From sequence record NC_042056.1: a DNA stretch of 64,000 nucleotides. One strand, given 5' to 3'. Position 1 is the stretch's first letter, and each line of letters begins with the position of its first letter. A program made the position numbers and the translations under genes. Of the stretch, positions 11,404 to 41,444 are shown in pieces. Below the pieces are notes generated by a model. The model was not told the DNA's origin and made no database searches. It saw only the letters and a list, made by a program, of their open reading frames with translations.

Positions 11404-11899
11404 CACCTATTGCCTCATTCCCGATTACCAAGAGGTGGCGGGACCGTTAACCGAGTTTGACCCTGCATCTGTTCTCCGCGAAGTCAACGAAGACATGAAC
11501 ACGATCATCAACCGCGCATTTACATTTGTTGAGTCGGGTCATTTGGACGGCTCGCTCGAGTTCAGCATGAGGAATACTTTCAACTACGTGGCGACCGAAC
11601 TGTCTACCCGTGGGATTGTGTTGGATAATGAGTCGACCGTGGTCTATGCGAACGCCATCCAGAATGTCGGTAAAGCATTCATGGTGGCTATCTCCTCCTC
11701 CCCTTACTGGTTCACCCGTTACGGTAAGTGGGTCGGTGCGCGTTATAGCCCGACGTGTATCGGTGGGGTTGATGTGTACCTTGACCATAACCAGCATAAA
11801 TTGCCGCAGTTCGAATCCGCTGAACAGTATCAGGCTATCACGCCGCGATTACTGACCGTGGTTGACATGCTGATTGGTAATCTGGGGGGTCGCCTATGA
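11393..11899 (+). CDS. hypothetical protein
   Basis: AGGAG RBS; translationally coupled. Confidence 0.75.
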   Translation: MLSNTYCLIPDYQEVAGPLTEFDPASVLREVNEDMNTIINRAFTFVESGHLDGSLEFSMRNTFNYVATELSTRGIVLDNESTVVYANAIQNVGKAFMVAISSSPYWFTRYGKWVGARYSPTCIGGVDVYLDHNQHKLPQFESAEQYQAITPRLLTVVDMLIGNLGGRL

Positions 11900-12468
11900 A
11901 GGTCTTTTACGATGTGTCCTCACGGGTTGTGGAGTTCGGGGCTACGCGCTTCTATGAACACGTCCGCGAACACATCTCCGCGATACTGACGGAGTGCCAG
12001 TTAGAGGTGACGAATGAAACCGTCGATAACCTTTACCATCTCTATCAGCGTTATGCCATGGCATATGTCATTGGGGTAACGACGCGGGACGCCGGTAAGT
12101 TTATCGAGAATTTGGTTGATGAATTTGCCGAGGGTGATGACGACAGTTACACCCTAGCAACTGATCGCTCAGGCTATGAGCTTCGACAACAGGGGTTACT
12201 ACTTGACCAAGCATTCGAAGACATTGTGGTGGATGAGTTACCGCTCATCTCGTCGATGATTGCACAGTTCCCCGGTTGTTCGGGTACGCAAGAGGAGCAT
12301 GAGAAAGCGATCAACATGGCCGCCGCTTTGTTCTTAGATGAAACCAGCACGGAACTGATGGGCCTAGCCAGCGTTATCGGTTCTGTGTGTCCGGGGAAAT
12401 ATATTGAACACTACGGCGATGATTTCAAAGGGTTAGTGGTGGTTTGCGAGCATGAAACTCTATTTTGA
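11896..12468 (+). CDS. hypothetical protein
   Basis: ATGA overlap with the previous gene. Confidence 0.75.
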   Translation: MKVFYDVSSRVVEFGATRFYEHVREHISAILTECQLEVTNETVDNLYHLYQRYAMAYVIGVTTRDAGKFIENLVDEFAEGDDDSYTLATDRSGYELRQQGLLLDQAFEDIVVDELPLISSMIAQFPGCSGTQEEHEKAINMAAALFLDETSTELMGLASVIGSVCPGKYIEHYGDDFKGLVVVCEHETLF

Positions 12469-36314: not shown

Positions 36315-38021
36315 ATGCAGCAGATTAACATCACGCACACCACCATGGGGGTGCGAATTGAAGTTCCTATCCGACCCGTTGAGATTGCTATCAAGACATG
36401 GGCGGAACGGAATCTGCACGCCCCGAAAATGGGAAAAGAGCGCGGCAAGATTACCGTGGAACAAGGAGATGGCTACTACGCCCACATGGAAGGCGCACGT
36501 AGCTTTATCTTTCACAAAGCCCACCTTGAGGAAATCCTCTCCATTATCAAGAACGCTATCATTGAATACCGTCTTGAGGTGGAGGTTAAGCACCACAAGG
36601 TCGAGCGGGCGGAGCCTTACCGTTGCACATTTGAAAACTTCGGTACGCCGATGGTAGTGGACGATCCTGAATCACGCTTCTATTACCAGAACGACGTGGT
36701 AGAGAAAGCGCTTGATCCGAACCGTCTCCAGACCATCTTTGCCATCGATACTGGCCGTGGGAAAACGAAGTCGTTGCAAAAGGTGATGGTGCGTAAGAAA
36801 GTGCGTACCGCCCTCATCATGCGCCCGACGTATGTGGACAAATGGCTGTTCGATATCTGCGAAGACCCGACTGGGTTGCAGATTGACAAAGACAAAGTTC
36901 TGGTCTGTCGTGGCGTCCAAGGGATTATTGAAGCCTACGAGATGGGTATCAGTGGGGAGTTAGACCGTCGGGATATCCGGGCGATTATCTTCCCAACCGT
37001 TTCGCTGCAATTGTTCCTGAAAGAGTACATCAACACCGGCCACTCAATGGGGATTGACATTGAGCGGTTCTACGATGTGATGGGTGTGGGTCTGATCGGA
37101 ATGGATGAGGTGCATGAGCATTTCTATTTGGTGTATCTGGCTGGGATTATCCTGAACCCATGTGCATCGATTGAAATGTCAGCCACCTTAGAACCGGGTG
37201 CCGCGAAGACGTTTATCATCGCGCGCTATCTGGAACGTTTCCCAGTCGACTTACGGCTGTCCGTTGAACGTATTAAGGTTGTTGATATCCGCGCGTTCTA
37301 CTACACGCTGGATGATAAGAAGTTGGCGTGGTGGGCGACAAAGATGTCCCCGTACAACCACAAGTTGTTTGAAGGTAAGTTGATTCGCGAAGGCTTCCAC
37401 GTTTCGTATTGTGAGATGTGGTGGAATCTGATCGAGAAGGTCTATCTGTCCAATTACCAACCGGGACAGAAAATCATCATCTTGTTCTCAACCGTTGACA
37501 TGTGTGAGTTCTTTACCCAGTTCCTGCATCAGAAGCTGGCGGGGAACGAACAGTTCAGCGAGTTGATGGTGGCGAAGTATAACGGTGGTGATTCGTATGA
37601 TGACTTCATCATGGCGGAGTTTGGTGTCTCTACGCCGAACAAAGCCGGTACCGCGATAGACAAACCGGGTATGGTCCACATGATTGTGACAGTGCCAGTT
37701 GATGACCAACAGCTGAACTTACAGATTGCCGGACGTCCACGTCCTGTGCGTGAGGTGTTCGGTTGGGACATGAACCCAATTGTGTGGTTCGGGCATTGCA
37801 TGAACATTGCTAAACACGGTACGTACCTGAACTCACGTATGCGTTCGCTGCGCGACACGGTATTGTCATTCAAGGTTGCGACTTCCCCTTATGTTGTAAG
37901 GAAAACGTATGATAACGCCCCCACTTCCAGCCGCCCCAACAGCCCCTTACGCCGGATTGACGTTGGCAGACTTTCTCGTAAAGGTTCTAAGGGCCTATCC
38001 CGGCGCAGAAAGCGCCGCTAA
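36315..38021 (+). CDS. superfamily 2 helicase (phiKZ gp75-like)
   Basis: Walker A TGRGKT, DEVH, SAT and QIAGRPR. Confidence 0.85.
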   Translation: MQQINITHTTMGVRIEVPIRPVEIAIKTWAERNLHAPKMGKERGKITVEQGDGYYAHMEGARSFIFHKAHLEEILSIIKNAIIEYRLEVEVKHHKVERAEPYRCTFENFGTPMVVDDPESRFYYQNDVVEKALDPNRLQTIFAIDTGRGKTKSLQKVMVRKKVRTALIMRPTYVDKWLFDICEDPTGLQIDKDKVLVCRGVQGIIEAYEMGISGELDRRDIRAIIFPTVSLQLFLKEYINTGHSMGIDIERFYDVMGVGLIGMDEVHEHFYLVYLAGIILNPCASIEMSATLEPGAAKTFIIARYLERFPVDLRLSVERIKVVDIRAFYYTLDDKKLAWWATKMSPYNHKLFEGKLIREGFHVSYCEMWWNLIEKVYLSNYQPGQKIIILFSTVDMCEFFTQFLHQKLAGNEQFSELMVAKYNGGDSYDDFIMAEFGVSTPNKAGTAIDKPGMVHMIVTVPVDDQQLNLQIAGRPRPVREVFGWDMNPIVWFGHCMNIAKHGTYLNSRMRSLRDTVLSFKVATSPYVVRKTYDNAPTSSRPNSPLRRIDVGRLSRKGSKGLSRRRKRR

Positions 38022-38343: not shown

Positions 38344-38955
38344 ATGTCTCGTCGTAAAAAGCAGCCTGGTTTTAGCCCGCGTGAAGCAGCACGCGAACGT
38401 GTCCGTAGCATCATGCGTGGCATGAACACGACTGAGAATGTTTTCCTCGGTCATTCGAAAACGCACGCCGAGAAAATCGACCGTGAGTTTGAACGTATCA
38501 ACTCGCTGATGGGCGAAGACCTGAAAGCGTATTTGACGGAGTGGTTAAAGCACTCACAGGCTGCCTTCTTGGGTGCCATGCACGACTTCAAAACGCGCCT
38601 GTTTGCGGTGCGTACTGATGCCGATGCAAAGGCAACCAAACTGATGGCGGTCATCGACGGCCACAAGTGGGACGAAATCAAAGATGTCGTGATTGTGGCT
38701 GAGCTGGAACTGGCGGACTTTGACATTCAGGTGGACAACGTGGCACAGGAAACCCTGCTGTCTATCGTTGAAGCCGGTGCGGCGTATGAACAGCGTCGTG
38801 AATGTGTCCGCGTGGGCCTGAACAACAACTGGACCCATGAAGCAATCCTGACCAAGCTGCGCGAGCTGGATGCCCAAGCTGCCGCCGAAGCACTGGCAGC
38901 GGCAGAAGCAGCAGCTGAATCTGTAGTAGAGCAAGAGGAACCTGCGAATGTCTAA
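38344..38955 (+). CDS. helical hypothetical protein
   Basis: AAGGA RBS before ATG 38344. Confidence 0.75.
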   Translation: MSRRKKQPGFSPREAARERVRSIMRGMNTTENVFLGHSKTHAEKIDREFERINSLMGEDLKAYLTEWLKHSQAAFLGAMHDFKTRLFAVRTDADAKATKLMAVIDGHKWDEIKDVVIVAELELADFDIQVDNVAQETLLSIVEAGAAYEQRRECVRVGLNNNWTHEAILTKLRELDAQAAAEALAAAEAAAESVVEQEEPANV

Positions 38956-40978
38956 CGATCCGCGTCCGTCGTTCGGTGCTGCCGAACCGGAAACGGCTGA
39001 GGTGCGACTTCCTCCGCGTGACACCCTTGTGGGTAAGTCCGCGGAAGAGGTGGCCTTCGAGCTGGTAAAACTCAATCCCACTTTTTCTTTTGCCGAAGCA
39101 ACTGAACGCGCGAAAAGTCTGGTGATGTTAAATGCCCCGGTAGAAGATACCCCACCCCCTGTGGTGGATGTACTCGATCAACCGATGATTCGTGAAGCGT
39201 CACCAGAAAACCTAGCGGCCCTGCAAAGCACTGAGAACCAACTGGAGCAGCCGGTCAAGCTTGATCTCTCTCCGGCACAGCCCGCAGTTGTTGAACCTGC
39301 GCCGCAGCCAGCGGTACAGCCGCGTGCTGAGCATATTGCTGAGCCACCACCGGTTGTGCGTCAAGAACCGGCCCCGCAACCCGCGCCTGTTAAAGCGGAA
39401 GTGATCCCGGCTCCGGCACTCGATGCCGAAGATACTCCGGCTGACCGCGATGAGCAGACGCCGAACCTCTCAAAAGAGAAACGTCGTCAGATTGATTTCG
39501 GGCCAGAACCGCACCGTGCTGAAATTGCCAGCATGGACCCGGAAGACCCACATCGTGTGCTGACTCAAAGTGATGAGCTGGTCGGTACTACATTGCCGCT
39601 GGCCGGTGAGCAGGAAGTCATGCAGTTCTTCGCCAGCATCCCACGTAATCGTGAAGGGCGTCCGATGTTCCGTTCAGCCGCCGAAGAGGAGCGTTATCAG
39701 AAGCTCTTTACGGCGCTGGAACTGACCCCGCCTATCATGATTAACAACCGCGCTGCGTTTGACATGGCGTTGGAGCGTGAAGATACGTCGTGGCAACAGA
39801 CCATCCAACTGTCGAACGGTAAGTATGTCTCTGCGGTCACCGACCGTGGTGCAAATGCCCAAGGTGCGATGGCTGCCCTGCGTCGTCGTCGTGGTTCCGG
39901 TTCTCCGGTCTCAGTGTGGTTGCCTGCAACCGGTATCTTTGTCGGTTTCCGTGCCCCGCATGAAAACGACATGTGTGACTTCGACATTCGTATCACGTCA
40001 GAACAGTCGAAAATCGGGATGTTCACTTACGGTCTGCTGTTGGCCTCGTCTTCGGGCGTGTATCTCCAGCACATGATCGAACACTCGCTGAACTTTGCGG
40101 TGGACACCACGTACGACTGTCAGGGTCTGGACATTAAGACCGCCCTGATGGACATCGTGGATGTGGACGACTACTGGCTGCTGGTCATTGGCCCATTGAT
40201 GGCGAAGTTCCCAGCGGGTATTCCGTGGAAGCTGCTGTGCCCTAACCACGAATGTGGTCATGAGCGTGAAGTGCGTCTGAATCTGGCCCGCTGTATCCGT
40301 ATGGCAGATGGCCTGTTCTCTGACCTGCACCGTTCGCTCTGGCTGCGCCAGCGTGGTAAAGGCCCGGATGCAATTATCGGCAACGCCGAGTATCTGGAAT
40401 ACCGCAAAGAGCTGCCGAAGTCCAAAGCCGCCCGTTTCCATTACGAGCAGCTGGGTATCACGGTAGAGTTCGGTCGTTCGACCATCGGTCAGTTCATTGA
40501 CAACACCAATGCGTGGGTAGAGAAGATTAACAGCTCTGCCACGAACGCACTGGCGAACCATGCAACTGAAACCGAGCGCTCGCAATACATCCGTCTGGCT
40601 GCTGAGAACCGCCGCCTGACCCGTTATGCGACACACGTTAAAGCCATCATCGTTGAAGAGACGGTGAAAGGTGAACCGGTTGAGACCCGCGAAGAAGATC
40701 CAGACCGTATTTTCGAAATGTTAGAAGAACTCTCTTCTGACCGCATGTACGTGCTGGCATTTGAAAACGCGCTGTCCACTTACAACGAAGAATCGCGCAT
40801 GGCCGTGTTTGGTTACATGGGTCACGCGTGTCCGAGCTGTAAGACCGGAGAGGGTGAAGAAGACGGTCCGTTCCGTGGTATTGTTACCATTAGCCCGGAC
40901 AAGGTTTTTTTCGCGCTATCTCGTGTGGTGTTCGAGATACAGAGAGTCTACTTACAACAATTCGAAAATATTGGATAG
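38948..40978 (+). CDS. conserved protein, candidate tail/baseplate assembly chaperone
   Basis: P/A/E-rich N-terminus, CPNHEC and CPSC, and KVFF encoded by a slippery T7 run. Confidence 0.7.
   Translation: MSNDPRPSFGAAEPETAEVRLPPRDTLVGKSAEEVAFELVKLNPTFSFAEATERAKSLVMLNAPVEDTPPPVVDVLDQPMIREASPENLAALQSTENQLEQPVKLDLSPAQPAVVEPAPQPAVQPRAEHIAEPPPVVRQEPAPQPAPVKAEVIPAPALDAEDTPADRDEQTPNLSKEKRRQIDFGPEPHRAEIASMDPEDPHRVLTQSDELVGTTLPLAGEQEVMQFFASIPRNREGRPMFRSAAEEERYQKLFTALELTPPIMINNRAAFDMALEREDTSWQQTIQLSNGKYVSAVTDRGANAQGAMAALRRRRGSGSPVSVWLPATGIFVGFRAPHENDMCDFDIRITSEQSKIGMFTYGLLLASSSGVYLQHMIEHSLNFAVDTTYDCQGLDIKTALMDIVDVDDYWLLVIGPLMAKFPAGIPWKLLCPNHECGHEREVRLNLARCIRMADGLFSDLHRSLWLRQRGKGPDAIIGNAEYLEYRKELPKSKAARFHYEQLGITVEFGRSTIGQFIDNTNAWVEKINSSATNALANHATETERSQYIRLAAENRRLTRYATHVKAIIVEETVKGEPVETREEDPDRIFEMLEELSSDRMYVLAFENALSTYNEESRMAVFGYMGHACPSCKTGEGEEDGPFRGIVTISPDKVFFALSRVVFEIQRVYLQQFENIG
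40906..40939 (+). other. putative -1 ribosomal frameshift signal
   Basis: T TTT TTC in the correct frame plus a 7-bp hairpin at 40917-39. The -1 frame is open from 40894 to 41385. Confidence 0.65.
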
Positions 40979-41016
40979 ACGCCGACGACGTTCCAGCCGA
41001 AGCTATTATCACTGCC

Positions 41017-41385
41017 ATGAAGCTGGACACCACCTCGCTGTTCAAACGGCGAGACAGTCGACCTATCACGTATCAAGAAGCGCATGACGAGCTACTCTCC
41101 ACGTACGACGGGATACTCGGGTTAGAGACCGGTGAGAACAACATCAGTGTCTCTGACTTCGAGAACCCTATCAACCAGAGCTTGTATGAAATCTGGGCGA
41201 CCACGTACGTGCGTGAAGGTATCAAGGAGCTGTTTGGTTACGACCTTGATACCTGGCTTGATAGGCCGCGTTGGAAGTTGATGAAGCATCTGGAAATCGC
41301 AAAACGTCGTCGCGCAGAGCTAGACAATGCTAAGAAAGGCGCAATCCCGCCAGAACTTGAGAAAGAACTGAAAGGGCGCATCTAA
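41017..41385 (+). CDS. conserved protein, probably the C-terminal part of a frameshift fusion
   Basis: No RBS before ATG 41017; the frame is open upstream through the slippery site. Confidence 0.65.
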   Translation: MKLDTTSLFKRRDSRPITYQEAHDELLSTYDGILGLETGENNISVSDFENPINQSLYEIWATTYVREGIKELFGYDLDTWLDRPRWKLMKHLEIAKRRRAELDNAKKGAIPPELEKELKGRI

Positions 41386-41444
41386 GGGAGCTTCGGCTCC
41401 CTTATATTTTTTTGTTGTTATGAGACCCATTTTAGGAAACCGTC

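Follow-up and report, generated by a model that had tools for sequence, protein, structure and literature searches.

Gp55 and gp56 of Erwinia phage Machina are annotated as two consecutive genes for hypothetical proteins, and the question raised by this locus is whether they are instead two parts of a single gene, joined by a change of reading frame. The DNA analysed here, which we call the window, is a stretch of 64,000 nucleotides (nt) corresponding to the first 64 kb of the Machina genome (KX397370), with 100% identity and the same coordinates. We consider it likely that gp55 and gp56 are expressed through a programmed -1 ribosomal frameshift on the heptamer U_UUU_UUC near the 3' end of gp55. 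An initial annotation of the window had proposed that -1 recoding fuses the 676-amino-acid (aa) open reading frame (ORF) to the ORF downstream, and this proposal is strongly supported by the conservation of the heptamer, of the relation between the two frames and of coding in the -1 frame. The event would be a canonical -1 frameshift in a new and widely conserved family of giant-phage genes, and it is annotated in no record that we opened.

The proposed slip site and the -1 frame in Machina

The elements of the locus on which this reading depends are listed here in window coordinates.

38948..40978, plus strand: gp55, the zero-frame ORF; 676 aa, 'hypothetical protein' in the record
41017..41385, plus strand: gp56, annotated as a 122-aa 'hypothetical protein'; equal to the 3' part of the -1-frame extension
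38948..41385, plus strand: the whole of the proposed recoded gene, that is, the gp55 ORF with its -1-frame extension; predicted products of 676 aa and ~812 aa
40906..40912, plus strand: slippery heptamer U_UUU_UUC, with UUU in the P site and UUC in the A site, both Phe codons; inside a run of seven T (T7) at 40905-40911
40913..40978, plus strand: dual-coding overlap, the 21-codon zero-frame tail and its stop codon, read also in the -1 frame
40912..41385, plus strand: -1-frame extension, 157 codons and a stop codon; predicted small helical domain

In the frame of the 38948-40978 ORF the codons at 40904-40912 are GTT TTT TTC, which places T_TTT_TTC in the X_XXY_YYZ register, as the initial annotation had described. 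The stop-free -1 frame that it gave as 40894-41385 is likewise borne out; this frame is open from 40894 to the stop codon at 41383-85, a length of 163 sense codons. The shift point lies 22 codons before the zero-frame stop codon (40976-78) and the extension comprises 157 codons; counting codons gives 655 + 157 = 812 aa for the long product, in agreement with the fusion of about 810 aa estimated earlier. Read as one gene, 38948..41385 is intact in Machina, with no lesions. The first ATG, GTG or TTG in the -1 frame is the ATG at 41017, the annotated start of gp56, which is found 39 nt past the gp55 stop codon. This ATG had been described as having no ribosome-binding site, and we found no Shine-Dalgarno (SD)-like core in front of it; such a core precedes 8 of 10 neighbouring starts.

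We propose that most ribosomes would read gp55 to the stop codon at 40976-78 and produce the 676-aa protein, and that a fraction would slip back by one base on U_UUU_UUC, with both tRNA-Phe re-pairing with UUU Phe codons after the -1 slip. The slipped ribosomes would continue in the -1 frame to 41383-85 and yield the product of ~812 aa, in which the last 21 residues of the short form are swapped for a 157-residue helical domain that is partly annotated as gp56. The two isoforms would share residues 1-655, and their ratio would be set by the efficiency of the slip, as in lambda G/GT. In E. coli, heptamers of the form H_HH.U_UU.Y rank with the most efficient, and insertion sequence (IS) elements make use of U_UU.U_UU.C (PMC4066793).

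Taken on its own, the Machina sequence does not set the features of the slip site beyond chance, and the window contains 22 T7 runs where 12.4 +/- 5.2 are expected. The significance of the site therefore comes from comparison with relatives and not from the single sequence. Only one other in-register heptamer with the same ORF geometry occurs in the 64 kb: GGGGGGT at 11884-11900, four codons before a stop codon and followed by a -1 ORF of 194 codons. The next gene starts there at an ATGA stop/start overlap, and we rejected this site as a case of ordinary translational coupling.

Conservation of the run, the register and the -1 frame

To place the heptamer in an evolutionary context we compared 24 loci of the SPN3US/Machina type, drawn from phage records, IMG/VR and metagenome assemblies. 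Of the 24, 23 have C directly after a T7 run that begins at codon position 3, so that the run, its register and the following C are identical in these orthologs, as the initial annotation would predict. The distance from the T7 run to the zero-frame stop codon is 67 nt in 22 of those loci. The residue before the Phe-Phe pair varies between Val, Leu and Ile, and its codon always ends in T. The register of T7 and C is kept down to protein identities of 34% and 27% (proteins P0040 and P0041).

Conservation in this clade extends to both reading frames around the run. The -1 frame is open across it for 158-206 codons, and for 158-209 codons when all 32 loci besides Machina are considered, which bears out the expectation that the frame would be open in orthologs. 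Translations of the -1 frame align without gaps from the heptamer to about 48 residues beyond it, and of the 63 phage records found by tblastn with the -1 piece, 62 match it from residue 1 or 2. The tail of the zero frame is also conserved at the protein level.

Canonical start codons in the -1 frame, on the other hand, are not conserved. The position of the first ATG, GTG or TTG ranges from -150 to +117 nt, counted from the zero-frame stop codon, in the SPN3US/Machina-type loci, and this scatter accounts for the different choices made by annotators, who placed the start at an ATG in Machina and SPN3US and at a TTG far downstream in Caitlin. In Caitlin, the loci L012 and L013, Derbicus and phiKZ the earliest start lies +114 to +219 nt beyond the zero-frame stop codon, and in all of these conserved coding sequence is found upstream of the first start.

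Selection on the two frames was examined at the codon level with 16 distinct sequences, using 327 upstream windows of equal size as the null. Upstream of the heptamer, codons for a shared residue are identical with a frequency of 0.513 and the third-position divergence is 0.587. The three codons of the heptamer show complete identity (1.000) and no divergence (0). For the 21-codon overlap the frequency of identical codons for a shared residue is 0.744, as opposed to 0.510 +/- 0.044 upstream (maximum 0.611; z = 5.4), and third-position divergence is 0.349 against 0.594 in the upstream windows (z = -5.8). Between the zero-frame stop codon and the Machina ATG, divergence at positions 1, 2 and 3 of the -1 frame is 0.46, 0.31 and 0.67, a periodicity that matches the undisputed coding part further downstream. 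The suppressed synonymous variation in the overlap, together with the conserved zero-frame tail, indicates that both frames are under selection, as expected if the short and the long product both matter.

In the same set of sequences the Pro codon at 40895-40897, three codons before the heptamer, is CCG in 16 of 16, with a third-position divergence of 0, and the codons adjoining it vary freely. This invariant CCG may reflect an effect of context on slippage or a constraint imposed by the -1 frame.

More distant relatives give a consistent picture. Gp55 is a homologue of SPN3US gp39 and phiKZ gp77, as judged by tblastn with the conserved domain of the protein, and the designation of Machina as a phiKZ-like phage in the initial annotation is thus well founded. 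Independently of this comparison, a supplementary table of a published study pairs SPN3US gene 39 with phiKZ ORF077 and gives no phiKZ partner for SPN3US gene 40 (PMC5105663). The tblastn search with the conserved domain reached 175 phage records, including phiKZ (PHIKZ077), PhiPA3 (074), RSF1, RSL2, Ea35-70/RAY and Xoo-sp14, and in the 33 loci examined, which represent at least 15 lineages, the downstream ORF is always in the -1 frame. The matching gene pairs are gp77/gp76.4 in phiKZ, 074/073 in PhiPA3, ORF196/195 in RSF1, 263/262 in Ea35-70 and gp39/gp40 in SPN3US. At the aligned Phe-Phe position, phiKZ, RSF1, Ea35-70, Xoo-sp14 and SNUABM_48 have U_UUU_UUY within T7 or T8, the run being eight T in RSF1 and Ea35-70. 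The -1 frame of these loci with a perfect site has no stop for 171-209 codons, and the small ORF annotated downstream lies within it. Most other phiKZ-like clades that we opened have UUU_UUY at the homologous Phe-Phe together with the -1 relation.

The phiKZ locus (L026 4068-4583; NC_004629, reverse strand) illustrates how much of the extension may escape annotation. The 80 aa of PHIKZ076.4 correspond to the 3' end of a longer ORF of 171 codons, which begins within gp77, 12 nt upstream of the T7 run. The first start in this frame lies 219 nt past the gp77 stop codon, and the gap is annotated as non-coding; the translation of the -1 frame nevertheless matches phrog_12109 (expectation value, E = 1e-23) from residue 33, upstream of the ATG at residue 92. 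Among the Pseudomonas phages the conserved -1-frame residues begin directly after the run, and the helical C-terminal part of the -1 products is homologous across clades. Two loci delimit the point of the frame change: the heptamer in L009 is preceded by a single codon of open -1 frame, and in D6 the zero frame stops nine codons after Phe-Phe. Taken together, these limits confine the change to between about one codon before and nine codons after the Phe-Phe pair.

In the more distant Agricanvirus clade, version 2 of the RAY gp266 protein (L035 2373-2921) has an annotated start 136 nt inside the upstream gene. This re-annotation suggests that annotators noticed the long -1 ORF without considering a frameshift.

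Candidate stimulators and alternative explanations

Several observations weigh against a programmed ribosomal frameshift at this site. The T run encodes a hydrophobic-Phe-Phe motif that is itself conserved, and this partly confounds the conservation of the run. The run is a homopolymer, of seven T or, in the two phages named above, of eight, on which a polymerase could slip just as well (PMC4066793). The sites in PhiPA3 (G_UUU_UUU), D6 (A_UUU_UUU) and HPP-Temi (A_UUU_UUC) are imperfect, with UUU_UUY in register and only 5-6 T, and no such site is present in PhiEaH1 or in Vibrio phage pVp-JHP1101. The latter (L005 3381-3875) keeps the -1 relation and has T5 only, outside the heptamer register; in addition, GAGGAG precedes the ATG of its downstream ORF by 3 nt, so that the downstream domain can apparently be made on its own in this phage. 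No trans-frame protein is reported in the literature that we found, and no link between frameshifting and SPN3US, phiKZ gp77, the Chimalliviridae or jumbo phages appeared in the literature searched, the coverage of which was incomplete. Finally, we found no convincing stimulatory element: the one candidate hairpin is at chance level, with a core that is broken in 3 of 16 lineages, and there is no conserved SD-like element upstream. Slip efficiency could therefore be low.

The candidate hairpin had been noted in the initial annotation as part of the frameshift signal.

40917..40939, plus strand: hairpin with arms at 40917-23 and 40933-39; perfect 7 base pairs (bp), 9-nt loop, 4-nt spacer after the heptamer, -7.1 kcal/mol

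The perfect 7-bp pairing is present as described, and a role as stimulator is not supported by shuffled sequences, by covariation or by the state of the hairpin core in relatives. The Machina hairpin is equalled by 51 of 200 shuffles, and the 85-nt stretch from the heptamer onward folds no better than its shuffled counterparts (z = +0.5). Most relatives have a 5-bp core, and the energies in relatives, -4 to -5 kcal/mol, are worse than those of shuffles. The fraction of hairpin cells that are paired is 78.6%, as against 77.8% in shuffles, with 57 of 500 shuffles reaching the observed value; the conservation of the hairpin in orthologs, which had been put forward as a check, is thus no better than that of shuffles. 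A compensatory change was seen in one sequence only and the covariation is not convincing, and no consensus RNA structure was found among the relatives. Any conservation of the hairpin is in addition confounded by the dual coding of the same stretch. As a possible SD-like stimulator upstream of the heptamer we considered CCGGA, the only such element that is conserved, and rejected it, as the Ser-Pro-Asp codons account for it at least partly.

The homopolymeric run and the missing stimulator would both be compatible with a slip of the RNA polymerase rather than the ribosome. In this explanation the phage or host polymerase stutters on T7 or T8, and mRNAs of altered length give rise to the same long protein. 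These phages carry their own multisubunit polymerases, and enterobacterial genes contain UUUUUUU less often than expected in every frame, which slippage may explain (PMC4066793). Transcriptional slippage needs no register, however, and would favour longer runs, and the run is exactly seven T in 23 loci and keeps a constant register. HPP-Temi, PhiPA3 and D6, with their 5-6 T, retain UUU_UUY in register along with the -1 ORF. Efficient slippage by bacterial polymerases usually needs runs of about nine or more. Given the fixed register, the length of seven and the relatives with only 5-6 T, the ribosome is a better candidate than the polymerase, and we consider transcriptional slippage, the main alternative, improbable as the source of the long product; it is probably the ribosome that slips.

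A second alternative takes the annotation at face value, with gp56 as an independent gene that starts at ATG 41017, at a non-canonical codon or by re-initiation, and with a T run that merely encodes Phe-Phe. Separate coding sequences (CDSs) are given in all the records opened except that of SEGD1, the Machina ATG is only 39 nt past the gp55 stop codon, and the Vibrio relative has GAGGAG and an ATG and no slippery heptamer. Other features weigh against this explanation: ATG 41017 has no SD-like core, starts are not conserved and conserved coding sequence extends upstream of the first of them. The -1 relation is also invariant in 33 loci, the synonymous sites of the heptamer do not vary and the overlap carries a dual-coding constraint. 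We regard two independent genes as less probable still than a slipping polymerase, and infer from these observations that gp56 is not, or not only, a separate gene.

That a homopolymer miscount, to which such runs are prone, splits one ORF through sequencing or assembly error, or that the gene is decaying, is extremely improbable, because the same run length and the same split recur in dozens of independently sequenced genomes of several genera and the zero-frame tail is itself conserved, and because SEGD1, whose record shows a single 795-aa ORF, has the same T7 as its relatives and differs from SPN3US elsewhere.

In the SEGD1 record the CDS in question (SEGD1_042; L004 614-3001) is distinguished from its SPN3US counterpart by a single cluster of changes that alters the overall length and removes a highly conserved motif; the DNA is otherwise identical. 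The single ORF is probably an assembly artefact or an isolated variant. Natural fusions of the two frames were not found elsewhere. None of 45 homologues of the upstream protein (389-706 aa) is a full-length fusion, and neither is any of the 23 matches to the -1 piece in a set of 1.84 billion representative proteins; these are 80-165 aa long, except for a frame-disrupted fragment of 312 aa and two long proteins with short partial matches. The 312-aa metagenomic protein (P0047) was considered as a fusion and rejected, as it stems from a short contig and has more than one frame disruption. A CDS joined across the frames is annotated in none of the 18 records opened. A profile search of a set of 5.8 billion proteins returned no new relatives, its word filter probably having been saturated by the low-complexity N-terminus of the protein.

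Predicted products, known systems and gene context

The AlphaFold model of gp55 has a mean predicted local distance difference test (pLDDT) score of 68.5. The N-terminal ~280 residues are mostly modelled with low confidence and are rich in Pro, Ala and Glu, with a short confident helical segment near residues 20-60. The conserved domain, with four conserved Cys residues, extends from about residue 280 to 655, and the model shows a confident mixed alpha/beta domain at about 280-640. The -1 extension belongs to the family phrog_7580, which is related to phrog_12109 and phrog_13274, and is modelled as a small helical bundle (pLDDT 72). No solved structure was matched by gp55 or by the -1 domain in sequence and fold searches of the PDB. 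In BFVD the gp55 model matches giant-phage homologues and, more weakly, a 687-aa 'Baseplate protein' of an uncultured myovirus (E = 1e-16); it also matches a 'Baseplate hub assembly protein, bacteriophage T4-like' with E = 6.9e-6 and TM scores of 0.24 on the query and 0.50 on the target, in a comparison of one predicted model with another. The conserved domain thus resembles, in its predicted fold, the T4 gp26-type baseplate hub assembly protein of the InterPro/Pfam T4-baseplate family. Unlike that protein, gp55 has no sequence-profile match and is not located in a baseplate cluster, and T4 gp26 itself stood outside the comparison. No Pfam or NCBIfam profile matched the gp55 family, and hmmscan of 28 and 9 members against Pfam returned no baseplate hub family even at E <= 1.

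From these models we tentatively suggest, as a possibility that is more doubtful than the frameshift, that the protein may be an assembly or scaffolding factor with a predicted T4 gp26-like fold that needs both a short and a long form. No function for SPN3US gp39/gp40, phiKZ gp77 or 201phi2-1 gp136 was found in the literature, where most mentions of a gp77 or gp136 refer to other proteins; the Churi homologue of phiKZ gp077 is listed among the proteins that are expressed early (PMC11849849).

Comparison with known recoded genes gives some insight into what such an arrangement could achieve. The dnaX gene of E. coli uses a programmed -1 frameshift on a homopolymeric heptamer to set the ratio of two isoforms, tau and gamma. 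In dnaX the shifted frame stops almost at once and yields the shorter isoform, and the shift is stimulated by an upstream SD-like element and a strong stem-loop; in gp55/gp56, by contrast, the shift would lengthen the protein, and neither kind of stimulator was found. The lambda G/GT pair resembles gp55/gp56 in that the two proteins share an N-terminal part, to which the -1 frame adds a C-terminal domain in one of them. Lambda G is about 140 aa long, whereas gp55, with 676 aa, is about five times that size, and its slippery motif is of the U-rich class. By analogy, gp55/gp56 may work like G/GT at the level of decoding. The G/GT arrangement is conserved despite great divergence of the proteins, with T4 as an exception (PMC5009743). 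The OrfA-OrfAB fusions of IS3 and IS911 are likewise formed by a heptamer-driven -1 shift between two overlapping ORFs, but these elements have defined stimulators (those of IS911 and the IS3 pseudoknot; PMC4066793), none of which is evident here, and their product is a transposase in an unrelated genetic context.

The initial annotation had gone further and, calling the function uncertain, regarded the pair as the equivalent of the lambda G/GT or P2 E/E' tail-assembly chaperones, a claim that fails on gene context, protein size and family matches. In Machina, gp55 is preceded by two RNA-polymerase beta-subunit genes, a helicase gene, gp53 and gp54, and gp56 is followed by gp57 and then by another RNA-polymerase beta-subunit gene. 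The neighbourhood includes homologues of phiKZ gp79, a structural head protein according to the phiKZ record. The context is thus one of replication, transcription and head genes, with no tail genes; the helicase, gp53/54, the phiKZ gp79 homologue and a virion RNA-polymerase beta subunit stand where tail tube and tape-measure genes would be expected of tail-assembly chaperones. No tail-assembly chaperone family was matched in Pfam, PHROG or NCBIfam, and the sole BFVD entry named 'tail assembly chaperone' had E = 4.7. With neighbours that are not tail genes, a protein about five times the size and no match to a chaperone family, identity with G/GT is unsupported.

If the frameshift at gp55/gp56 is real, the annotation of the gene pair would be corrected for the 175 phage records in which the upstream gene has a homologue, and phiKZ gp76.4 would become the tail end of the 171-codon extension of gp77. 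Phages that attract intense study because of their nucleus-like compartment would gain a deeply conserved recoding event. It would also provide a handle on a widely conserved protein, as isoforms in a fixed ratio usually point to a role in assembly or regulation, and a natural U-rich frameshift site with which to study translation in cells infected by these phages. In its most extended form the argument would hold that the frameshift is an ancient one, common to the nucleus-forming phiKZ-like phages (Chimalliviridae), that it fixes the isoform ratio of a T4 gp26-like core assembly factor and that it is the functional counterpart of G/GT in contractile-tailed phages for which no such pair is recognised; we think this combination unlikely.

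Downstream of the extension the following element was found.

41383..41413, plus strand: strong terminator-like hairpin of 9 bp, including 5 GC pairs, with a T run; begins at the -1-frame stop codon

This element is probably the end of the transcription unit.

A separate observation concerns the start of gp53. Within the 3' end of the helicase gene (gp52), at 37900-38021, its frame (+1) has no stop over about 40 codons, and the encoded protein sequence is conserved there; the same overlap is seen in two further loci (L002 1483-1604 and L003 1083-1204). An ATG lies at 37909 in Machina, with an equivalent ATG in SPN3US, and the annotated start is a TTG at 37957, which is probably too far downstream. 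A start upstream of this TTG would give a conserved overlap of about 113 nt between the helicase gene and gp53. The basic tail of the helicase is also conserved.

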